From positions 7,812,001 to 7,876,000 of the forward strand of contig CM075979.1 of assembly GCA_038087875.1 (NCBI GenBank): a stretch of 64,000 nucleotides of DNA, in the 5' to 3' direction. This document shows, one piece after another, positions 2,281-59,578 of this stretch. Source of the DNA: Malacoraja senta. Taxonomy: Eukaryota. Position 1 is the first letter of the stretch, and every line of letters begins with the position of its first letter. The notes under the pieces were generated by a model that was not told where the DNA came from, did no database searches, and saw only the letters and a program-made list of their open reading frames with translations. The position numbers and the translations under genes were made by a program.

Positions 2281-3273
2281 TTATTGTAATGGGGGATTTA
2301 ATACTGTATCCAGCACGGCATCACCAAACCCTCTGAGATCTTTAATCTCCTTATGGTAATACTTGTGAAACATCTGTTCACTTGCCCATCCTGCGGCCGC
2401 GAGAATAAGGTCTATTGTCTGAATCCCTGGCCGCTGATGTTGATGCCGCCCTGGTGGAATGAGATTTAAATTTATCAGTATCAATACCTGAATATCTCAA
2501 CACCTGTTTCAACCATCGTGAAATTGTTTGTGTTGACACTTTCTTATGAGGCTTTTTATGACTAATAAAAAATGCCAATTCGGTGCCTCTTAAAACTTTT
2601 GTTGTTTCTATGTAACATTTCACATATGTTACTACACACAGTCGTGGATCTGTAGAATATGCTAAAAATTTCAACTTGCATCCTGTGAACCTAGGTCTAC
2701 TTTGCTTCAGTAAATCATAGACATAGAATGTCACAGCATTTGGCCCTACTTTCATTCTATCAATTCTGAGTTTCTGTAATGTTTGAACTCTCTGAGCTGA
2801 AACTAATGCCATGAGCATAACCAATTTCATGGTGATTTTGGATAATGACAGAGTTTCAACTGGATTCCAATTCCTTAGCAACATCAGTATATCTTTTACA
2901 TTCCAAATTTCTGTATACCTAGGTCTGGAGGATTAGAGTTGAAAATTCCTTTCATAAACCTACAGACCCAAGGATGTGCTCCTATTGGAGTTTGTTCTGA
3001 TTCACTGCTTAAATATGCAGAGAGTGCACTACGTGCAGTATTAATTGCACTATAATTTAATTTTAATTCATAGTATAGAGTAGAAAGGAACTCTATTACA
3101 TCTGAAATTTCTGCTGTGTTATATGCAATATGTTTCCCTGAACAAAACTCCTCCCATTTCTTTATATAGGAGATGTACTGCTTCTGGGTACTATTCCTCC
3201 AGGCTGTTGTTATAACATCCACCGTACGGTCTGATAATCCTTTTCCAAGATATGGCCTTCTCAGAATCTGCAA
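2281..3273 (-). pseudogene. DIRS tyrosine recombinase, frameshifted
   Basis: ORF pieces 2896-3273, 2378-2884, 2281-2484 with SAINTARSALS, LVSAQRVQ, HSTRAASTS, AAGW...FHKYY (R-HxxR-W-Y catalytic set). Confidence 0.9.
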
Positions 3274-14927: not shown

Positions 14928-15540
14928 TAGTTTAGTTTAGAGATATAGTACGGAAACAGGCCCACTGGGATCCGTGCCAACCAGCGATCCCCACACATTA
15001 ACACCATCCTCCACGCACTAGATAGATAGATAGATAGATAGATAGATATGCCTTTATTGTCATTCAGACCGAAGTCTGGATGAAATTGCAGCAGTCATAC
15101 ATATAATACAATAAAAACAACAATAAACACATATTAACATCCACCACAGTGAGTCCACCCAGCATCTCCTCACTGTGATGGAGGCAAACGTCTTAGGTCT
15201 GCAGCCTCTTCCCTCCTCTTCTCCCTCTGCGCTGAGGCGATACCCCCCGGGAGATGTTATAAATCAGTCCCGCGGCTCAAACACCGCGGCCCGGGGTGGT
15301 CGAAGCTGCCGCCCACCACTAGGGACAATTTTTACATTTATCAAGCCAATTAACCTACAAACCTGTACATCTTTGTGCTGTGAGAGGAAAACCGAAGATC
15401 TCGGAGAAAACCCGCACAGGTCACGGGGAGAACGTACAAACTCCGTACAGACAGCACCCGTAGTCGGGATCGAACCTGGGTCTCCGGAGCTGCAAGCGCT
15501 ATAAGGCAGCAACTCTACCGCTGCACCACCGTTCCGCCCT
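14928..15540 (-). mobile_element. HE1/V-SINE (tRNA-derived) interrupted by a LINE 3'-end insertion with (GATA)n tail at ~15021-15316
   Basis: SINE tail ttagtttagagata..gaaacaggccc and head ggcagcaactctaccgctgc; cactag repeated on both sides of the insert. Confidence 0.8.
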
Positions 15541-15959
15541 GCTGTTTGTCCAAACTCTCTTGTAATTCTAAAATCGTAAAGTTACACAAAACACGGTCAG
15601 TTTCTCCATAAGATTGTTTGATGGCTTCCCTAGACAATGCCTTGCATCTTCTTTCTCTTATTTACAGATTGTTTTTTCAGCTCGAAGCATTGTCAGCAAT
15701 TCTTTCGTATCTTGCGGTTCTTGAAAAGTGCCAAAGGCCTGCAAATTTATTACACTCTGCTCCATAACAGCGGCAGAGTATTCTGCCTCCATATGGTGGG
15801 AGCAGTCTGGCTTCTTATGATTTTCAATTTCTTACTGTTGTCGTGTATAATACTCATCATGTCTTTGAATACAGTAGTAAGCCACATATGCTAACAATTT
15901 AATAGTCTTATCTACTTTATTCTTCTTTTGATCTGCCTGTTCCAGAATAAAATTTACTG

Positions 15960-16100
15960 CCGAGCTGCCAACTCTCACACATTGAGCGTGAGAATCACGC
16001 ATTTCGCCCAATTCTCACGCTCTCAAGCTGATCCTAGAATTTCTCACGCTCTGTCGTGAGAAATTCTGTGATCAACGAGAATTTCAAAACTATTATAAAC
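15960..16100 (+). mobile_element. Probable left end of a non-autonomous DNA transposon (hAT-like gagctgccaact start with ctcacgc subterminal repeats)
   Basis: Terminus resembles the (C/T)AGGGTTGCCA class of TIR; repeated tctcacgc/gtgaga motifs; no matching right TIR found. Confidence 0.4.
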
Positions 16101-16231
16101 TGCATGGGCCGTGGGTGTTGGAGAGCTGAGGGAGGGATGGAAGCAGAAGCAGCGGCGAGGACAGATGCGGACGGGGAGCCGGTGCTGGCGTGTGTATGCC
16201 GGGCTGGCGAGTGTTTGCTGCAGCTCCGGCC

Positions 16232-16378
16232 ATGGAGCAGCCTCAGTGCAAGAGTCCCGAGGCGTCGGAAGCGTTGCGCCGCTGCCCTGAGAGTCTCTGC
16301 GCTGAATTCACCCTGGTGACCGGCATGGACCAGGCTGCGTCTTGGTACATCCTGGAGGACAACCAGTGGCTGCTGGAA
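16232..16378 (+). pseudogene. Orphan first coding exon resembling the TDP2 N-terminal UBA-like domain
   Basis: GCCATGG Kozak start; MEQPQ...SLCAEFTLVTGMDQAASWYILEDNQWLLE followed directly by GTAAGT. Recalled human TDP2 segment: LCVEFASVASCDAAVAQCFLAENDWEME. No downstream exons seen. Confidence 0.6.
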
Positions 16379-16494
16379 GTAAGTACCAAGCACTGGGTAG
16401 AAGCGGTGGAAGACAGTGGCCTTCAAATGGGGGTGGTTGGAGAAAGCATCCTGCTTGCCTGCTAGATTTTCACTTACTGTAACTGCAGGAAAAA

Positions 16495-16830
16495 ATTTCC
16501 CGATGTTGGGGGAGTTCAGAACCAGCGGTCACAGTTTAAAAATTAGGGGTAGGCCATTTAGGACTGAGATGAGGACAAACTTTCTTCACCCAGAGAGTTG
16601 TGAAATTGTGGAATTCTCTGCCACAGAAAGCAGAGCAGGCCAATTCACTGGATGTTTTCAAGAGAGAGTTACATTTAGTTCTTGGGGCTAGCGAAATCAA
16701 GGGATATGGGGAAAAAACAGGAAAGAGGTACTGATTTTAGATGAACAGCCTTGATCATATTGAATGACAGTGCTAGCTCGAAGGGCAGAACGGCCTATTC
16801 CTGCACCTTTTTTCTATGTTTCTATGTTTG
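16495..16830 (+). mobile_element. CR1/HER1 LINE 3' tail
   Basis: FPMLGEFRTSGHSLKIRGRPFRTEMR and tail cctgcacc...(ttctatgt)n. Confidence 0.85.
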
Positions 16831-17394
16831 AGTACATGGCAAAAAACACTCGACCACTTGATTTTGAAGCATTCATGCATGGTGGAGGTATAATGTAGTT
16901 ATAGAGTGATACAGTGTGAAAACAGGCCCTTCGGCCCAACTTCCCCACACCTGCCAACATGTCCCAGCTACGCTACCTGCTTTTGGTCCATATCCCTCCA
17001 AACCTGTCCTAACCATGTATCAGTCTAACTGTTTCTTAAATGTTGGGATAGTCCCTGCCTCAACTACCTCCTCTCAACTACTTCCATACACCCACCACCC
17101 TTTGTGTGGAAAAAGTTACCCCTTAAAAAGTTACCTCTTAAAAATACTTTTAAAAAAAACATTGAAATCATACTTCTACAATGCACTAAAACATAATTTT
17201 AATACATCAAATTTCAAAAGGTCCCACACCCTCCCCCCACTTGGTCGCTGCACTCCCTCACTGGGTACCCCCAAGGCCAGTGATCAGTGATCACTCAGCT
17301 CCCCCCACTTTCAAAAAAGCTCTGCGGCCTCTGGTTCAGACAGAGAGCACTGCTGGATGTGAGCGGGGAACCGAGGCCAGTTGTCCGTGATGTA

Positions 17395-18926
17395 CCCTGA
17401 TGGTCTGCATCCCAGGGTACTAAAGGAAGTGGTTTTAGAAATCGTGGATGCATTGGTGATAATTTTACAATGTTCTATAGACTCAGGATCAGTTCCTGTG
17501 GATTGGAGGGTAGCTAATGTTATCCCGCTTTTTAAGAAAGGCGGGAGAGAGAAAATTGGGAATTATAGACCAGTTAGCCTGACATTGGTGGTAGGGAAGA
17601 TGCTGGAGTCAATTATAAAAGATGAGATAGCTGAACATTTGGATAGCAGTAACAGGATCGGTCCGAGTCAGCATGGATTTACGAAGGGGAAATCACGCTT
17701 GACTAATCTTGTGGAATTTTTTGAAGATGTAACTAGGAATATGGACAAGGGAGAGCCAGTGGATGTAGTGTACCTGGACTTTCAGAACGCATTTGATAAG
17801 GTCCCACATAGGAGATTAGTGGGCAAAATTAGGGCACATGGTATTGGGGGTAGAGTGCTGACATGGATAGAGAAGTGGTTATCAGACAGGAAACAAAGAG
17901 TAGGGATTAATGGGTCCCTTTCAGAACGGCAGGCAGTGAGTAGTGGGGAACCGCAAGGCTCGGTGCAGGGACCACAGCTATTTACAATGTACATCAATGA
18001 TTTGGATGAAGGGATTCAAAGAAACATTAGCAAATTTGCAGATGACACAAAGCTGGGTGGCAGTGTGAACTGTGAGGAGGATGCTATGAGAATGCAGGGT
18101 GACCTGGACAGGTTGTGGGAGTGGGCAGATGCATGGCAGATGAAGTTTAATGCGGATGAATGTGAGGTTATCCACTTTGGTAGCAAAAACAGGAAGGCAG
18201 AATACTATCTAAATGGCGTCAAGTTGGGAAAAGGGGAAGTACAACGGGATCTGGGGATCCTTGTACATCAGTCTATGAAAGTAAGCATGCAGGTGCAGCA
18301 GGCAGTGAAGAAAGCGAATGGCATGTTGGCCTTTATAACAAGAGGAATCTAATATAGGAGCAAAGTGGTCCTTCTGCAGTTGTACAGAGCCCTAGTGAGA
18401 CCACACCTGGAGTATTGTGTGCAGTTTTGGTCATTCTTGCTATTGAGAGAGTGCAGCATAGGTTTACAAGGTTAATTCCTGGGATGGCAGGACTGTCATA
18501 TGCCGAGAGAATGGAGCAGCTGGGCTTGTACACTCTGGAGTTTAGAAGGATGAGAGGGGATCTCATTGAAAAGATTGTTAAGGGTTTGGACACGCTAGAG
18601 GCAGGAAACATGTTCCCGATGTTGGGGGAGTCCAGAACCAGGGGCCACAGTTTAAGAATAAGGAGTAAGCCATTTAGAACGGAGACGAGGAAACACTTTT
18701 TCTCACAGAGAGTGATGAGTCTGTGGAATTCTCTGCCTCGGTGGAGGCAGGTTCTCTGGATGCTTTCAAGAGAGAGCTAGATAGGGCTCTTAAAAATAGC
18801 GGAGTCAGGGGATATGGGGAGAAGGCAGGAACGGGGTACTGATTGGGGATGATCAGCCATGATCACATTGAAGGGCTCGAAGGGCCGAATGGCCTACTCC
18901 TGCACCTATTGTCTATTGTCTATTGA
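17395..18926 (+). mobile_element. CR1/HER1 LINE, 5'-truncated, RT domain open over 323 aa
   Basis: PDGLHPRVLKE...NYRPVSLT...SQHGF...YLDFQ.AFDKVPH...KFADDTKL; ends in (ctattgt)n. Confidence 0.95.
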
Positions 18927-19895
18927 TGCATGGGCAAGGACAAACTGGTCCCATGAGCACCAATATCTTTCAATCTGTCACCACAATAACCCCCTTTTCT
19001 ATTATTTCTACCAAATGATCACATATCCAACATTATATTCAATTTGATATGCCCTGCACTTATCCACTTTGCCTTTCTTCTCTTTCTGTTTCATTGTCTA
19101 CACCTCAACCCACCTTCCCAAATTATTTCCAACCTTCCCCATCTCCCTATCACCCAGTTTCTTTCCCCTCCCCTGCCACGTGTTGGTTACCCACACACTC
19201 TTACCACTCCCACCCTCCCTTAATTCCCATCTGTCTACCCGCTGCCCTATTTAGTTTAGAGATACAGAGCAGAAACAGGCCTTTCGGCCTACCGAGTCCA
19301 CGCCGACCAACACTAAACTACACTAAACCACACACAAGCACTATCCTACACACTAATTTACATCTTTACCGAAGCCAAGTATCCTACAAACCTGTACGGC
19401 TTTGGAGTGTGAGAGGAAACCCTGGAGAAAACCCACATGCAGTCACTGGGAGAACATACAAACTCCGTACAGACAGCATCCATAGTCAGGATCGAACCCG
19501 GATCTCTGATCAGGGTGTAAAAGCCCTGTTTCACGGTGCGAGCTGACCCACGAGGTACCCCGAGTGAAAGACTCGTGGAAGTGTACGAGATTCCAAGTGT
19601 ATGATCAAGAGTTTAACCGAGTTCCCACGGGTATGACTACGTTTGCCGTTTACTTGTCATTTCTGCGATGTTCCAAGTTCGTCTCCCGAGTTACCAAGTT
19701 CCTCTCCCGAGTTACTCTTGAGCCAACCGTGAATGAAGTCTGTTTTAATAAGCAACAGTGTTAAAGAAGACATCTCCATCCTGCGGCTTTGAGTTAAGAT
19801 AGAATTCAGCGCGGCCGCATCTATTGATATGATCTACAAAGGGAAAATGCGCACCGTCCAGTGCCAGAGCAGTTATACTTATGATTTGTTTGAAA

Positions 19896-20278
19896 CAATA
19901 GCAGTGAGGAAGAAGCATTCTCACGTCTACACCAGTGATAAACCGTACAACTGTAAAGTAAGAGGCTGCGACAAGTCATACACTCACCCTAGTTCTCTTC
20001 GCAAACACATGAAAGTTCACTGCAAATCTCCTCCCCCTCCCGCTAGCTCAGGCTATGAACTTTCAAACACATCCCTGGGGATGGTGTCCCCAGCCGCAGA
20101 GACAGTCAGGGGCCGCACTGCCAGCGTGTCCTCACATGTAACCAACCTCAACGAATGGTACGTCTGTGAGGGAAGCGGGGCGGCCAACAGCCTGCATGCA
20201 CCTTCCAACAATGGCACCTCGTCCGACACCGAGGATGAGGAAGTTTACACGAACTCTGATCCCAGAACTATGCTCTGA
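19896..20278 (+). pseudogene. ZIC5: ZIC5-like last-exon fragment (end of zinc finger 4, finger 5, C-terminus)
   Basis: [44 protein letters not shown]...[10 protein letters not shown]...[19 protein letters not shown] matches the recalled ZIC5 C-terminus (ZIC4 not fully excluded). NSSD codons lie upstream out of frame; last His of ZF4 is Tyr. Confidence 0.8.
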
Positions 20279-21617
20279 TATAGGTGCGTTGGAGAAGTGT
20301 GCAAGTGGGCAAGAGTCAACGCAGGGTTAGTGGCAATGGAGCCCATCAACTAAAGGCAGCTAGGATGTCCAATGATGACCATCTTACACCAGCTAGATTT
20401 AAACCTCGTAGGAAAGGAATTTAAGGGCTAAGTATCGGTTCTTAGGCAACTTTTTGGCCTCCGTGTCAGTCAGAATTATTGTGTGTACTTCGAGGTAAAA
20501 GAGAATCGCTATCTCATTTACTTTCAGACTATAAATATTGATTTTCTGAAATCAGACGTGACTTAAATAGATAAAACATATCATCAGACCCATTTCGGAC
20601 TGGCAATAGAATCTTCGACCCACGAGAAACACCTCGCTTCTTGGAAGTGATACATACATTGCCGATCTTTGCTTACTCCCAAATTAGAGACCATTGTCCG
20701 AAAGAAGGGAAATTCTACAATTCTGTGAAATCTTCATGACTATAATCCCTGGAGGGAATCAAAACGGCCATAGCCTTGTGTTCAGTGAAATGACCCAGTG
20801 CCACCACGTTCGGTAACGAAGCACAAGCGACATTCTATTTACACATACCTAACATACAAAGCTGAATTCGGACTTTCCTGCTATATGTGAAAAGAGTCTT
20901 CTATCAGTAAGAGTGAAACTCACAAGTACTCTATTTGACCCTGAAATCAGAATCGACAATATCTCAACCCTTAAATCCAAGAGCTCTAGGATTCTTTTGT
21001 GTGATCTTCTATCCGTCATGGTAAAGTAAAAAATCTCATATTTTACAGATAATTATTCAGGCCTTCAGACAAGCAAACTAAAGAGCACTAATATATCCTT
21101 AGAGGCCAGAAGATGCAAAAATGACAGGCCTGTCCCTGTAGGATTTGTACATAATTGTCGTTAGCTATGTTAAGATTTTGTCCAGAAATGCTCTTTTATT
21201 TGTAAACTATAATTTATTTGCTGATGTGTCATATCTTTCTGCGATGGTACAGACACACCAAAGAATTATATTATTACGTTTGGTGCTGTATTGTGGTGTT
21301 TATGAACTGTGGTTTCGTCAGACAATTTAATTTTTGATTAATTGAATGAAATGTAAAATGTGAAAAGTAAAATATGTGATTGTTTATTTCTACTCAGTGG
21401 TGGTTAATCGTTGTAACTACAGTATTGGTCCATGTTATGATCATGATGCTTGTTGCAGTCATCTTGTATTTCCCTTGCATTGACAAACGCCACCCAGAAC
21501 TCCTGATTGAAAAAAAATGCAACAAAGACAGTTCCTTTATTGAAATGAATGGTCCACGTGTACTTTGTGTTTCAGTGAAAGAGGTTAAACCGTGTGACAG
21601 TGTATTTTCCAATTGTG

Positions 21618-21623
21618 AATAAA
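21618..21623 (+). terminator. Putative poly(A) signal of the captured ZIC 3' UTR
   Basis: AATAAA after ~1.3 kb of AU-rich, TGTA-rich UTR-like sequence, followed by a GT/T-rich stretch and no poly(A). Confidence 0.55.
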
Positions 21624-24600
21624 GAGATATTGTTCTTCCTCTGTTTTAATAATCGTATTCCATATTAAATGTCTAAATCCTAACAAAATGTCAAAACGTG
21701 ATTTTTTTTGCGGGGTCTGCGGATGTAGCAACACTCAACTCGATCTTCGATAGTGAAGAATCGAGTAATCTCAGCCAATGATGGAAAGCCAGATGATTTC
21801 AGGCCCCGGGCGTGAGTTTTATGTTTATATGTTTATTGTTGCACAAGGACCTCTGCCTCTGTGCAAATATTTACCTGTTCAATGGCAGAATGGGAGACAT
21901 GTAAGAGGCAGGTCGAAGAAGCTACCTGGATACAATTGGCAGCCGGATGTAAAACAGTTCACAATATTATCTGTAATCGTTATTTGAAAACAACGTAAAA
22001 AAGGCAAGCAAAAAAGTCACATTTGTTTTCGGAAATCAAAATGTTCTGGAGTCCAAAATTGCAGGGAAACTGGGAGATATATTGGTTGAGGTGAAATCAA
22101 GATTTAACGAAGATTCCCGTTTTACAAATCCGGTCGCAGTACACGAATATACCGAACTGTTTTAATATCTCCACAGTTCAGTTGTAACCTCGCCCCACAA
22201 ATGTTATACTTGATGATTTACATGTTATTGCACGGTCATCCCCAGCAGCGCACAAAACCAAAATGCGGCATCAAAAACAATGCGGCAAAATACATCGTTT
22301 CCGCAATTCAATTTCTGATTGTCACAGTTCTAGATATGATGAAGTTTTTCAAAATTCATCATCTGTCTCAGAGGAACTGAATTTGTCTCTAGGATCATAA
22401 TGAATATTTAAATTATTATCGTCGACTTTATGTACGTTATGGATGGTATATCCCATGTACCGCTGATCGCGCTTCAGGGTCACCTTGTGAAGGTGGATAT
22501 CATACCACCTAAAAGCGCTGGAGTTACACAAAGACAGCAGAAATTTGGAAATGTCATCCCATCACACATTCCTTCTCTCCAGAGATGCTGCCTGCCCGCT
22601 GAGTTAAAGAGTTCCCACGGTAGACTCACGAGTCACTAAGGTAAACGCACGGGCCACTACGTTCTTACAACATGTTTAAATGTTTCAAATTTTAACCTCA
22701 AGAGTACATTTTACTCGTGGAAAAGTTTAAACATGTTTGAATTTTTCCAAGAGTTAACAAGTGTCACAGGTACCTGCCATTAGCGCCAAGAGTCGCTAAG
22801 TTACGTTCACGAGTTCCGACGTTCCCGCTACGTTAATCGTACATGATTACCACAAGTTAAATTTGTTTTAAGCTCAGGGTACCTCGTGGGTCAGCTCGCA
22901 CCGTGAGACGGGTTTAAGGTAGCAACTCTTACTTCTGCTCCACCGTGCCGCCACTCTTCGCTTTCCCTTCTTATCAGCTTCCATAATCTGCAGTAGGAAA
23001 TTTTATTCTCTACCCATCACCTCCCATCCTCTATCAGGTTGAACTAAATTACTTGCACATGACCTGGTGTTAGAGCAGTTACTTTTTCAAAAATTAAGGA
23101 ATCATTTTTTAAACATTTCACTTTAATTGCGAGGACCGTGGAAGGGAAGCTGTGTTTTCATGAAGTATATATAATTTTCATTAAGACAGAGCTGTCATGC
23201 ATGGATCGTGTGCCATGTGGCGGAAGCAGTCGCACCAGCCAGATGAGTCCAGTGACCTCGTTTTATGCTGTAACAATATAAGTATCACAAAATAATCTGG
23301 GCCCTATAATTTTCCACAGCCATGACTTGTATTGATCTGTTGGCAGGAGAGAACCTATTTTGTATTTCCTACTTTGATTGCTTGCGCCCTTGGTGTGCTG
23401 CATCTGTCTGAGGAAGTGCCAGACTTTAACAAAGAGATTAGAAAATTATCCATTTCAATCAAAATTCACAGACATGCAGAAGATGGTAAATCGATGGGCC
23501 TAAGTAGTATCTGCATGAATCTGTGTGACGTTGGTCCAACAATCATGATCTTATTGGACTTTAAAAAAAATATTTTACCAGTATCTTCCAATAAGCACAT
23601 TAATTTGGAATTTAACAAAATAGCATATAAAGTAACATAAAAGGATTTCCTAACTTATTGTTAATAAATGTCTGTGCATGATTCCTTTATTATTAACAGT
23701 TGGAATTTTTGAAGAAATATTTGTACTTTGCTGCTTGGCTCCAAGTAATCTGCGGGATCTGGTGTGAGACTCTTTGAATAATGGCATTTAAAAAAATGGA
23801 TGTAAACATCAAATTAAGAAATGTAATATGATGAAACATACATAGATGATTCAACGAGTGACCCTCCTGCCAACTGGTGAAGAATGACATTTTATTGAAA
23901 CTTGGCAAAATATAAAATTTTAAGAATACAGGTTTATAGGAATATTTTAACCTTTTTTTTGACCCTTTAAATGTCATTGTATTACTGTAAGCATTGGAAA
24001 TATGACATTTAGATGTAGGGTAGAATTTGACCTTTTAAAGATGCTTTATAGATAATGAACAATGTGAACTCAATTTTTATCTGGAAAACCAGGTTCTTGC
24101 TTTCATTTTAACTGAACTACATGGGCTAAGATACATGTAATCAGGCGATTTGTGATTGTGAAGAGAATTCAACTGCTGTTTATATTTCTAAATTCATGCA
24201 AGATTTAACATTGTGGTGTTGAAATGGGCAAATATAATCCAGTTGTAATGGAGCTACCATCCTGCGCTGTGGCACGCACGATACAGTAATTGTGAATCAA
24301 CAGGCTCCAGCAGGAGTTCAGCTGCAGCTTCATGGCTTCAGCATTATTCAGTGCGGGTGGTTTATGCTTGAGAGATTTACCACAGATACATTTTTATTCA
24401 TGGTGAACATGGGCTGAATGAAATGTTATTGTCATGTATTTTTGGAAAGGTCTAAAAGGTTGTTCTCCTTGGATAAGGGGAAGTCTATGAATTTAATGAA
24501 TATACTCAAAATTACAAAGGGATTTGCTGAGCAAATAAAATTTCATCTGGAGGGAAGGTTGATCACCAGAGAAGAGAGAATTAACTATAATGACTAAAGG

Positions 24601-27391: not shown

Positions 27392-29008
27392 CAGTGGCTT
27401 GCAAAAGTATTCATACCCCTTGAACTTTTCCACATTTTGTCACGTTACAACCACAAACGTAAATGTATTTTATTGGGATTTTATGTGATAGACCAACACA
27501 AAGTGGCGCATAATTGTGAAGTGGAAGGAAAATGATACATGGTTTTCAAATTTTTTTACAAATTCAAAACTGAAAAGTGTCGCGTGCAAAAGTATTCAGC
27601 CCCCTTTACTCTGATACCCCTAAATAAAATCCAGTGCAACCAATTGCCTTCAGAAGTCACCTAATTAGTAAATAGAGTCCACTTGTGTGTAATCTAATCT
27701 CAGTATAAATACAGCTGTTCTGTGAAGGCCTCAGAGGTTTGTTAGAGAACATTAGTGAACAAACAGCATCATGAAGCCCAAGGAACACACCAGACAGGTC
27801 AGGGATAAAGTTGTGGAGAAGTTTAAAGCAGGGTTAGGTTATAAACAAATATCCCAAGCTTTGAACATCTCACGGAGCACTGTTCAATCCATCATCCGAA
27901 AATGGAAAGAGTATGGCACAACTGCAAATCTACCAAGACATGGCCGTCCACCTAAACTGACAGGCCGGGCAAGGAGAGCATTGATCAGTGAAGCAGCCAA
28001 GAGGCCCATGGTAACTCTGGAGGAGCTGCAAAGATCCACAGCTCAGGTGGGAGAATCTGTCCACAGGACAACTATTAGTCGTGCACTCCACAAATCGGGC
28101 CTTTATGGAAGAGTGGCAAGAAGAAAGCCATTGTTGAAAAAAAGCCATAAGAAGTCCCGTTTGCAGTTTGCCACAAGCCATGTGGGGGACACAGAAAACA
28201 TGTGGAGGAAGGTGCTCTGGTCAGATGAGACCAAAATTGAAGTTTTTGGCCTAAATGCAAAACGCTATGTGTGGCGGAAACCTAACACTGCACATCACCC
28301 TGAACACACCATCCCCACTGTGAAACATGGTGGTGGAAGCATCATGCTGTGGGGATGCTTTTCTTCAGCAGGGACAGGGAAGCTGGTCAGAGTTGATGGG
28401 AAGATGGATGGAGCCAAATACAGGGCAATCTTGGAAGAAAACCTGTTAGAGTCTGCAAAAGACTTGAGACTGGGGCGGAGGTTCACCTTCCAGCAGGACA
28501 ACGACCCTAAACATACAGCCAGAGCTACAATGGAATGATTTAGATCAAAGCATATTCATGTGTAAGAATGGCCCAGTCAAAGTCCAGACCTAAACCCAAT
28601 TGAGAATCTCTGGCAAGACTTGAAAATTGCTGTTCACAGACGCTCTCCATCCAATCTGACTGAGCTTGAGCTATTTTGCAAGGAAGAATGGGCAAAAATG
28701 TCAGTCTCCAGATGTGCAAAGCTGGTAGAGACATACCCCAAAAGACTTGCAGCTGTAATTGCAGCGAAAGGTGGTTCTACAAAGTATTGACTCAGGGGGG
28801 CTGAATACTTTTGCACGCGACACTATTCAGTTTTTAATTTGTAAAAAAATTTGAAAACCATGTATCATTTTCCTTCCACTTCACAATTATGCACCACTTT
28901 GTGTTGGTCTATCACATAAAATCCTGATAAAATACATTTACGTTTGTGGTTGTAACGTGACAAAATGTGGAAAAGTTCAAGGGGTATGAATACTTTTGCA
29001 AGCCACTG
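27392..29008 (+). mobile_element. Full-length Tc1 DNA transposon (IR/DR type, Passport/Eagle-like)
   Basis: TA flanks at 27390-91 and 29009-10; ~210-bp near-perfect TIRs starting cagtggcttgcaaaagtattca, with an internal repeat of gcaaaagtattca. Confidence 0.97.
27771..28790 (+). pseudogene. Tc1 DD34E transposase, 339 codons, two in-frame stops
   Basis: Paired-like N-terminus, [27 protein letters not shown] (34 residues between D and E); TGA at 28536-38, TAA at 28563-65, no frameshift. Confidence 0.95.
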
Positions 29009-47632: not shown

Positions 47633-49525
47633 CAATAGACAATAGGTGCAGGAGTAGACCATTGGGCCCATCGAGCCGGCACCGCCGTTAAATGTGATCA
47701 TGGCTGATCATCCCCAATCAGTACCCCGTTCCTTCTCATATCCCCTAACTCCACCATCTTTAAGAGCTCTATCTAGCTCTCTCTTGAAAGTATCCAGAGA
47801 ACCGCCCTCTGAGGCAGAGAATTCCACAGACTCACAACTCTCTGTGTGAAAAAGTGTTTCCTCATCTCTGTTCTAAATGGCTTACCCCTTATTCTTAAAC
47901 TGTGGCCCCTGGTTCTGGACTCCCCCAACATCGGGAACATGTTTCCTGCCTCTAGCGTGCCAAACCCTTAATAACCTTATATGTTTCAATAAGATCCCCT
48001 CTCATCCTTCTAGATTCCAGAGTATACAAGCCCAGCCGCTCCATTCTCTCAGCAGATTACAGTCCAGCCATCCCGGGAATTAACCTTGTGAACCTACACT
48101 GCACTCCCTCAATAGCAAGAATGACCTTCCTCAAATTTGGAGACCAAACTGCACACAATACTCCAGGTGTGGTCTCACTAAGGCCCTGTACAACTGCAGA
48201 AGGATCTCTTTGCTCCAATACTCAACTCCTCTTGTTATGAAGGCCAACATGCCATTCGTTTTTTTCACTGCCTGCTGCACCTGCATGCTTACTTTCATTG
48301 ACAGATGAACAAGGACCCACCAGATACCGTTGTACTTCCCCGTTTCCCAACTTTGACACCATTTAGATAATAATCTGCCTTCCTGTTTTTGCTACCAAAG
48401 TGGATAACCTCACATTTATACACATTAAACTTCATCTGCCATGCATCTGCCCACTCCCCCAACCTGTCCAAGTCACCCTGCATTCTCATAGCATCCTCCT
48501 CACAGTTCACACTGCCACCCAGCTTTGTGTCATCTGCAAATTTGCTAATGTTACTTGTAATACCTTCATCTAAATCATTAATATATATTGTAAATAGCTG
48601 CGGTCCCAGCACCGAGCCTTGTGGTACCCCACTAGTCACTGCCTGCCATTCTGAAAGAGAGCCGTTAATCCCTACTCTTTGTTTCCTGTCTGCCAACCAA
48701 TTTTCTATCCATGTCAGCACGCTAACCCCAATACCATGTGCCCTAATTTTGCCCACTAATCTCCTATGTGGGACCTTATCAAATGCTTTCTGAAAGTCCA
48801 GGTACACTACATTCACTGGCTCTCCCTTGTCCATTTTCCTAGTTACATCCTCAAAAAATTCCAGATTTCCCCTTTGTAAATTATGATTTACAAAAAGCAT
48901 GATTTCCCCTTTGTAAATTATGTTGACCCGATCCGATCCTGTTACTGCTATCCAAATGTGCCGCTATTTCATCTTTTATGATTGACTCCAGCATCTTCCC
49001 CACCACCGGTCAGGCTAACTAGTCTATAATTCCGTTTTCGCTCTCCCGCCTTTCTTAAAAAGTGGATTACATTAATTACCCTCCAATCCACAAGAACTGA
49101 TCCTGAATATATAGAACATTGGAAAATGTTCACCGATGCGTCTACGATTTCTAGAGCCACTTCCTTAAGTACCCTGGGATGCAGGCAATCAGGCCCTGGG
49201 GATTTATCAGCCTTCAGTCCCATCAGTCTACCCAACACCATTTCCTGCCTAAGATGGATTTCCTTCAGTTCCTCCGTCACCCCAGATCCTCTGGCCACTA
49301 GTACATCAGGAAGATTGTTTGTGCCCTCCTAAGTGAAGACGGATCCATAGCACCTGTTCAACTCATCTACCATTTCCGTGTCCCCCATAATAAATTCACC
49401 CTTTTCCGTCTTCAAGGGTCCAACTTTGGTCTTAACTAATTTTTTTCCTCTTCACATACCTAAAGAAGCGTTTATTTTCTTTATCTCCTTTATTTTCTTG
49501 GCTAGCTTATCTTCGTACGTCATCT
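47633..49525 (-). mobile_element. CR1/HER1 LINE, 5'-truncated
   Basis: ORFs 48295-48900 and 48969-49298 (RT motifs YLDFQKAFDKVPH, KFADDTK); reverse ctattg tail at 47633. Confidence 0.93.
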
Positions 49526-57142: not shown

Positions 57143-57472
57143 TGGCCCTGTCCCACGGTACGAGTTCATTCCAAGAGCTCTCCCGAGTTTGCCCTGATTC
57201 GAACCCGGAGACTTACGGTAATGGCCGCTCGTTGGTACTCGGGGCTCTCGTGGACATTTTTCAACATGTTGAAAAATCTTCACGAGTCTTCCCGAGCTTA
57301 CCTGCCGTTAGCGAGTCTTCCCGAGTACCTTCCGTTAGCATTACGAGCCGCTAAGAGACGTCCCCGAGCTCCGACGTACCCGCTACGTTCATTCTCCGTG
57401 CTTACCACGAGTTTGATTTTTTTTAAACTCGGTAGAGCTCTTGGAATGAACTCGTACCGTGGGACAGGGCCA
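57143..57472. mobile_element. PIF/Harbinger MITE (330 bp) nested in the Helitron
   Basis: Perfect ~39-bp TIR tggccctgtcccacggtacgagttcattccaagagctct; TAA TSD at 57140-42 and 57473-75. Confidence 0.95.
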
Positions 57473-57519
57473 TAACAATGAATGACCTGCGGAGGAAGGA
57501 ACTGCAGATGCTGCTTTTT

Positions 57520-57920: not shown

Positions 57921-59578
57921 GCTGCTGGAGGATGAGGGGAAATGAGCCGTGCCTGCGCAGTTGGGGGCTATGCATGAGTGGTGGAATATTGCATTGGGGG
58001 AACGGGTGAGTGGTGGAATATTGCGTCGGGGAACGGGTTGCGTTGGGGGACCAGGACTCCCGTGTGACAGGGGCCCAACGGGTCCCCACTTAGTCTAGTT
58101 ATCTCTATTTTTCCATCTAGAATTATTCAAATCTTTCATTCATCGACCAAACCTGGCAATTACAATAGTGACAGAACTCCACAAGCAGTGTGCTGAATGC
58201 AAGGGGAAAAAAATCGATGTACCAATCAAGTTATGAACCTCTCAATAATAATAAAACTCAACTTCCTTTTATGAAGCATTAGTTCTGGTCCATTAATGAC
58301 GACATGGAAAATAAAATAGTTTGCATTTAAAATCACGTCAAATGAATTACCATTACAAAAGGGCATTTGGTCAGTGTAAGGAAATATTGCATTCTCAACT
58401 CATAAGTACTTTGAAGCTCTCAGCAGACCTTGCACCACAAGCGTAATATGTTTTCATTACACCTACTGAGCAGGAGATGATTTCTTCCACTCACTGGATC
58501 ACAGCTGCCTGTTGATTCCACGCAGCTTGTTTTCAACACTTTTATTATAACCTTTTGCTTTTTCAATATAAATGGTGCAATTTAATGCTCATTTGTATTG
58601 TGCTCTCATTTAAGTCTTAAATTTAACCATTGGCGCACTAATCGTGATATCTAATGATCCATGGTCTCAATGTCTGTACCATTCAGTAAGTCTGCACCGA
58701 CTTTCATCTCGTTTTATTCACTTCCATGTTATTCTGCACATTTGCTCCTTATTGTGTTTCGTATTATTTATAAAGCCTGGAGAAAAAAAGCAGCTTTTTA
58801 AAGTCACAAATTTCACTGAGTTCGGTGATTTATTCGGTGATTCAGTCACAAGGCACTGCAGATGACTAAGGGTGCCGTTAAACTGAAATGGGTGCAAGAA
58901 AAGGATTACACAGATGCTCGAGCAAAGAAACAAATTGCTGGAGGAACTCAGCGGGTCAGGCAGCATTAGTGGGGGGAATGGACAGACAACGGCTTACCTT
59001 GGAACCCTTCCGGGCTCTTTACAAGGATGCTACTGGGTCAGGAAGGTTTACGTTATAAGGAGAGGCTGGATAGACTAGGACTTTTTTCCCCTGAACCGTA
59101 GAAGGCTGAGGAGTGACCTGGGGTGGGCAGCACGGTGGCACAGCGGTAGACTGAGTCAGGAGAAGGGTCTCAACCCGAAACGTCACCCATTCCTTCTATC
59201 CAGAGATGCTGCCTGTCCCGCTGAGTTACTCCAGCTTTTTGAGTCTATCTCAGGTTTGTAGGTTAATGTCCTTCAGTAAAATTGTAAATAGCCCCTGTAG
59301 GATTGTGTGTGGGATAGTGCGAGCGCGTGGGGTGGTCGCAGGTCAGTGTTGACTCAGTGGGCCAAAGGGCCTGTTTCCATGCTGTTTCTCTAAAGTCTAA
59401 AGACCTTATAGAGGTTTATAAGGCCATGAGGGGAATGGATAAGGTGAATGCCCATAATCCTTTCACAAGTATAGGGCTAGGTTTAAGGTGAGAGGGGAAA
59501 GTTTTATAAGGGTCTTGGGGGAAACCTTTTCACACAGAAGATGGTACAGAAATGGAACGAGCTGCCAGAGGAAGCTGT

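Follow-up and report, generated by a model that had tools for sequence, protein, structure and literature searches.

A 3.4-kb unit at positions 19518-22917 of the 64-kb window, the whole stretch of Malacoraja senta DNA analysed here, is bounded by 45-bp terminal inverted repeats (TIRs) and a TAA duplication and encloses 2,622 bp from the 3' end of a ZIC5-like locus. Taken together, the evidence makes it probable that this unit is a multicopy PIF/Harbinger element of the Pack type that arose by template switching and was later transposed, and in which the ZIC5-like cargo is a passenger. A Harbinger-type element carrying a piece of a host gene in an elasmobranch was also the central proposal of the original prediction, made from the letters of the window, and it is borne out by the TIR and TAA bounds, the ZIC5-like cargo and a parental locus that lies elsewhere. 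Read contigs from four organisms, coded A, B, C and E, bear on the analysis; organism A is the window's species, represented by two DNA runs of separate samples, X1 and X2. The parts of the unit are listed below.

19518..19520, no strand: left target-site duplication, TAA; the same TAA stands at 22915-22917, and the consensus of the surrounding short interspersed element (SINE) has a single TAA here
19521..19565, + strand: left TIR, matching the reverse complement of 22873-22915
19521..19895, + strand: transposon arm on the left (375 bp), high-copy in reads, whose subterminal motifs are CACGAG / CCGAGT / CCAAG
19896..22517, + strand: cargo, 2,622 bp from the 3' end of the ZIC5-like locus, delimited by blastn to Logan contig L001
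19907..20278, + strand: coding remnant comprising the end of zinc finger 4, zinc finger 5, the C-terminal tail and TGA (Pfam zf-C2H2)
20279..21640, + strand: captured 3' untranslated region (3' UTR); AATAAA at 21618, and 26 bp deleted after 21157 in the window copy alone
21641..22517, + strand: captured DNA beyond the poly(A) signal, ~0.9 kb, with no A-tail at its end
22518..22545, + strand: internal transposon sequence to the right of the cargo, ~6-7x as deep as the cargo in X1 and deeper still in X2
22546..22605, + strand: fragment of a hyperabundant short repeat (the GAAACGTCACCCATTCCTTCTCTCCAGAGATGCTGCC... family), with ~10 other window copies at 84-98% identity
22606..22914, + strand: right transposon arm including the right TIR (22871-22914), high-copy in all runs
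22915..22917, no strand: right target-site duplication, TAA, read from the sequence

Structure and insertion site of the element

The two TIRs, compared as 19520-19564 and 22873-22915, are identical at 41 of 45 positions (91%) and form the longest inverted pair of the region. When the flanks are joined with a single TAA, four other SINE copies in the window align unbroken over the join, and the SINE consensus derived from loose read ends at 19508 reads ...CTGTAAGGCAGCAACTCT... at the insertion point. Removal of the unit together with one TAA thus restores an intact SINE, showing that the element inserted at a TAA within it. The matching TIRs, the TAA duplication and the rejoining SINE had all been proposed beforehand, and each of them holds.

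Several features characterize the arms as parts of a larger transposon family. The motif CACGAG is enriched 40-fold in them, and the left arm (19521-19895) is high-copy in all four organisms, where short contigs tile 19521-19896. On the other side of the cargo, other copies have ...AACACACAGT before 22518 in place of ZIC sequence, and the short repeat at 22546-22605 reaches a depth in the millions in every run. With regard to transposase coding capacity, the only Pfam match in the whole unit is one zf-C2H2 domain, which lies within the ZIC remnant.

TAA or TTA duplications, together with MITEs (miniature inverted-repeat transposable elements) mobilised in trans, define PIF/Harbinger (PMC2836001), and the 3-bp TAA found on both sides of the unit is the duplication typical of this superfamily (PMC2836001, PMC8903248). 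The assignment of the element, and hence of its presumed transposase, to PIF/Harbinger is a probable one that rests on the duplication and the TIRs. The start of the element, GGCCCTGT..., may also resemble Tourist/PIF ends.

A 334-bp MITE at 57143-57476, flanked by TAA at either end, is a relative without cargo and belongs to another subfamily. It shares a TIR core with the ZIC-carrying element, namely GCCCTGT.TCACGGTGCGAG, GGCCCTGTC.CACGGT.CGAG and GGCCCTGTCCCACGGTACGAG, and its segment 57325-57430 is 77% identical to 22770-22875 in the right arm.

Extent and content of the ZIC5-like cargo

A protein search with the 149-codon open reading frame (ORF) of the unit gave one very close match, P0001 (93% identity), which derives from Logan contigs of the public runs SRR089296 and SRR090301, L001 (6,014 nt) and L002. 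Aligned to the window, L001 is 94.4% identical over exactly 19896-22517 and unlike it on both sides, with 1.76 kb of unrelated sequence upstream and 1.64 kb downstream of the cargo span. The cargo had been placed at 19720-22605 (~2.9 kb) by the original prediction; this span was too wide, as 19720-19895 belongs to the transposon arm and 22518-22605 is not ZIC sequence.

Both ends of the captured fragment are sharply defined. The parental last exon in L001, which is complete and has an intact acceptor, starts with TTTTCAG followed by the exonic sequence GAGAGAAGCC, and the cargo starts 49 nt into this exon, at CAATAGCAG. Because the cargo begins inside the last exon, it includes neither an intron nor a splice acceptor, and zinc finger 4 is incomplete. 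A captured splice acceptor at 19900-19901 (the 'AG' before 19902) was considered and rejected, since the sequence there consists of transposon arm and mid-exon. At the other end, homology stops abruptly after ...CCTAAAAGCG at 22517, where the parent goes on with AATGATAAAATGG.

The coding remnant retains 123 codons and the stop, with a frame that is still open in the window copy and in the consensus of the family, and is 97% identical to the parental protein P0001 over 123 residues. The left junction of the cargo carries a 2-nt deletion and a C>T change, and a zinc ligand of the finger-4 remnant is changed from H to Y in the family consensus as well. The description of the cargo as a C-terminal ZIC exon with stop codon, 3' UTR and poly(A) signal therefore stands in part: the TGA and the AATAAA are present, whereas the exon is truncated at its 5' end and lacks its acceptor. 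ZIC genes have five C2H2 fingers, upstream ZOC and ZF-NC regions and several exons, none of which the unit offers in full, and it is a fragment rather than a gene; tblastn with full-length ZIC proteins found no other ZIC exon in the 64-kb window.

The best named matches of the remnant are ZIC5 proteins, with 55-58% identity over 92% of the query, compared with 50-54% over 72-74% for most ZIC4 matches. The SDPRTML end is shared with teleost ZIC5 (P0130), finger 5 of the remnant has the ZIC4 reading, and a tree built on the common region gives a polytomy between ZIC4 and ZIC5. ZIC5 is thus a fair label and the best-fitting one for the parent, to be read as 'ZIC5-like' rather than as proven orthology.

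A separate parental locus

Organisms B, C and E each have one contig, 4.8-6.1 kb long, whose alignment to the window is confined to 19907-22517. The depth of these cargo contigs (17.6 in B, 19.2 in C and 84.5 in E) can be set beside that of the flanks (38-41, 14-23 and 85-120, respectively). A single long contig diverging from the window at both breakpoints identifies the parental locus in all three organisms, and the cargo is single-copy in them. In Malacoraja senta itself, one X2 contig continues past 22517 with the parental downstream sequence, and this species therefore still has the parental locus. The expectation that a real ZIC gene lies elsewhere is met by L001 and L002, by the contigs of B, C and E and by this X2 contig, next to a window in which no other ZIC exon is found.

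An exact look-up of two cargo or junction ORFs returned no record; the protein database contains just the parental ORF, from another species. P0001 (L001:1450-2220) starts within the intron and reads TGA as W, a genetic-code artefact of the gene caller that entails no real C-terminal extension. The read-through of TGA that it seemed to suggest was rejected, as L001 has a TGA and the database protein was called with TGA = W. In addition, 41 bp at 22213-22253 are missing from L001 and from the organism C contig and are present in the window and in organisms B and E; the comparison suggests that the source species of L001 is organism C of the coded runs.

Copy number and shared junctions

The number of copies was estimated from the k-mer depths of assembled contigs. 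In X1, cargo contigs of 92-745 nt have depths of 491-1152, as against 23 and 43 for the flank contigs, which differ from the window at 0 of 373 nt and at 2 of 611 nt. The right-flank contig (depth 23) begins 25 nt inside the right TIR, which shows that the insertion is present in X1 and that the flank of this copy is not amplified. In X2, the cargo contigs have depths of 90-116, against 4.7 for a variant contig. This variant was considered as the parental allele and rejected, because L001 is identical to the window there; it represents a divergent copy instead. These depths correspond to roughly 20-35 copies of the cargo in the window's species.

Contigs at cargo depth also span both arm-cargo junctions. 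The left one is covered by a 442-nt X2 contig (depth 92) that spans 19868-20309 and starts exactly at the first 31-mer specific to the chimera of arm and cargo. An 86-nt X2 contig (depth 116), whose consensus has two extra letters after 22533, crosses 22517 into transposon sequence. The copies consequently share both junctions. Compared with the window, the high-depth contigs differ at 32 letters, 28 of which restore the letter of L001, so that they represent a family consensus closer to the parent than the window copy is. The window copy has accumulated ~1.2% private changes, and the 26 bp after 21157 are missing from it alone, being kept in the parent and in the family consensus. One X1 contig (depth 14) represents a copy without 52 bp across the stop codon (20262-20313).

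In organisms B and C, right-flank contigs begin to align at 22915 and 22918, respectively, and extend by another 38-39 letters unlike the transposon. This would fit an empty orthologous site in both organisms. The original prediction had left undecided whether the element moved with its cargo or acquired it in place; read depth, shared junctions and single-copy flanks largely favour movement.

Breakpoints and a model for the capture

Loose read ends show that cargo-free copies of the family continue after 19896/19897 with GCACATCACGTAGTTAGAAGACC..., and the interior of the transposon appears in such ends as GCACATCACGTAGTTAG... and as ...AACACACAGT running into CTGGAGTTACAC. Since cargo-free copies read through 19896/19897 and have other sequence before 22518, both breakpoints are internal to a longer transposon. 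The CA at 19896-19897 is common to transposon and parent, so that the left breakpoint has a 2-nt microhomology; the right one is a blunt join. The same pattern is on record for animal Pack-TIRs, for which template switching during gap repair or at stalled replication, with a median microhomology of 2 bp, is the documented route (PMC8277862).

In the model that we favour, host DNA would have been captured at the DNA level, replacing the interior of a non-autonomous PIF/Harbinger-type transposon. While a longer family member was being copied in repair or replication, the new strand would have changed template to the ZIC5 locus and then returned. The resulting chimera would have kept both TIRs and the subterminal motifs, and the transposase of the family may have mobilised it in trans. 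It would then have multiplied to roughly 20-30 copies in the window's species only, the window copy landing at the TAA inside the SINE.

A number of observations weigh against this account or loosen it. The copy number is a rough figure, as any reading of contig k-mer depths must be, and the read contigs showed no second complete copy bounded by flanks and a duplication of its own. The left-junction contig has 29 letters on the arm side, not 31. Likewise, the empty site in B and C follows from the points at which alignments stop and not from a listed joint. Both TIR tips of the window copy are slightly degenerate (AAGCCCTG vs AACCCG), and an autonomous relative with the same ends, expected to encode a DDE transposase and a Myb-like ORF1, was not found in the window, whose long ORFs are reverse transcriptases, a Tc1-type helix-turn-helix (HTH) and a tyrosine-recombinase-like piece. 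As for the passenger state of the cargo, the six private coding changes comprise four synonymous and two non-synonymous ones, slightly fewer amino-acid changes than neutral decay predicts, in a sample too small to carry weight.

Alternative explanations

Most animal Pack-TIRs arise without transposition (PMC8277862), and the flanks of no other copy have been seen here. Both points would suit a chimera that formed in place or moved once and gained its extra copies by segmental or tandem duplication. Such a history is nevertheless improbable, given that the flanks of the window copy are single-copy beneath a cargo 20-35x deeper and that the flank contig turns unique exactly at the end of the TIR; at least 20 duplications, all breaking inside the arms, would be an unlikely series. 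We consider it very improbable that two family members inserted beside the 3' region of ZIC5 and were mobilised from their outer ends, although such a neighbouring-insertion model is documented for maize Pack-PIF families (PMC8903248). Under this model the inner boundaries would be expected at transposon termini; they lie instead within transposon sequence, as the cargo-free copies reading through 19896/19897 demonstrate. Moreover, the parental sequence has no TAA or TTA at either breakpoint, and the 1.6-1.8 kb of L001 on either side of the cargo span contain no family member.

The cargo corresponds to a transcript-like unit's 3' end, begins in the last exon and contains no intron, as a 5'-truncated ZIC5 retrocopy would after landing in a Harbinger element. 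Splicing can be neither shown nor refuted by a single last exon, however, and an RNA-mediated origin is made highly unlikely by the absence of an A-tail at 22517, by the ~0.9 kb over which the cargo extends beyond its only AATAAA and by the replacement of internal transposon sequence at two breakpoints, with no duplication belonging to the cargo itself. The idea that the unit is the exon of a real ZIC gene between two unrelated MITEs, or that its junctions are assembly errors, draws on nothing beyond the first impression of an ORF with a stop and a poly(A) signal, and can be set aside with near certainty: the start of the parental exon and its acceptor are absent, the 64 kb contain no other ZIC exon, and the same species has a separate parental locus. 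Mis-assembly at the junctions had been named in advance as an outcome that would overturn the proposal, and in the contigs of an independent second sample both junctions were found at high depth.

Function of the cargo

The cargo has no promoter and no upstream exons, and only one zinc finger is complete, the other four of the five being missing in whole or in part. These features lead us to regard it as no gene but a probable dead passenger. It may have a side effect on ZIC5, by way of small RNAs or by titrating microRNAs. The broader notion of an active system that repeatedly captures and amplifies pieces of host genes, an animal counterpart of the rice Pack-MULEs, in which dispersed ZIC5 copies feed back on the parental gene via small RNAs from sense and antisense transcripts or via microRNA titration, seems unlikely to us. 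Among RNA data from the other organisms, raw poly(A) reads of organism B yielded 2 reads, and an RNA contig run of organism C yielded none, which may reflect filtering.

Other repeats and features of the window

Further copies of the hyperabundant short repeat lie near 409, 30725, 31172, 33593, 36899, 44289, 45284 and 59160-59240. The fuller ones contain CTGAAGAAGGGTCTCGACCCGAAAC, a putative minimal hammerhead-like core; an Rfam search of the whole window gave no family at gathering score. An orphan TDP2-like first exon (MEQPQCKSPEASEALRRC...WLLE, then gtaagt) at 15960-16385 directly follows a transposon-like end in which CTCACGC/GCGTGAG motifs abound; a search of 15500-17800 gave no matching TIR pair. 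Mobile-element remnants occur at 2381-2884 (-), 17381-18349 (+), 27771-28535 (+) and 48298-48900 (-), and include a tyrosine-recombinase-like ORF (Phage_integrase, just under the Pfam cutoff), two reverse-transcriptase ORFs and the HTH region of a Tc1/mariner-type transposase.

Comparison with known elements and significance

The ZIC5 element belongs to the known Pack-type kind and stands out by the size of its cargo, its copy number and its host lineage. A survey of 100 animal genomes listed 370 Pack-TIRs, among them PIF-Harbinger cases from Xenopus (Tan et al. 2021, PMC8277862, Supplementary Data 1). The rarity in animals implied by the original prediction is tempered by this catalogue, in which vertebrate Pack-TIRs of the PIF/Harbinger type are already recorded; the word 'shark' does not occur in the main text of that paper (PMC8277862). 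Like these elements, the one described here is a TIR transposon with an internal copy of host-gene sequence whose parent lies elsewhere, with little or no microhomology at its breakpoints and a non-coding passenger. The captured pieces given as examples in the survey measure a few hundred bp, and 4/370 (1.4%) of the animal Pack-TIRs are multicopy, the example in the text having three insertions on different chromosomes (PMC8277862). By contrast, the ZIC5 element has a cargo of 2.6 kb and, judging from depth, about 20-30 copies.

Similarities extend to Pack-PIF and Pack-TYPE elements known from maize and rice (Gisby and Catoni 2022, PMC8903248) and to the rice Pack-MULEs, which are likewise non-autonomous TIR elements with gene fragments and family amplification; TTA/TAA duplications are shared with Pack-PIF. 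Unlike the ZIC5 element, the maize Pack-PIF example is a plant element with 163 bp of a gene, and its origin fits the fusion of neighbouring insertions (PMC8903248), whereas the breakpoints described here, internal to the transposon, would fit template switching. Tourist-like MITEs such as mPing, which is moved by Ping/Pong, also resemble the ZIC5 element in being non-autonomous and in combining a TAA duplication with TIR and subterminal sequence on which proteins act in trans (PMC2836001), although mPing is free of host-gene sequence.

In plants, cut-and-paste transposons that capture genes are a major contributor to gene shuffling. For animals, the one broad survey describes such capture as rare, small, almost always single-copy and mostly without transposition (PMC8277862). 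A Harbinger-type element that has carried 2.6 kb of host DNA to some 20-30 copies in a vertebrate would clearly contradict this picture. For ZIC biology, the relevance of the finding is low, and its practical consequence is that annotation pipelines run on this genome will come across numerous false 'ZIC5 last exons'. For transposon biology, the relevance is moderate to high: with breakpoints, parent and cargo-free relatives all visible, this is a tractable family in which to follow how such chimeras form.

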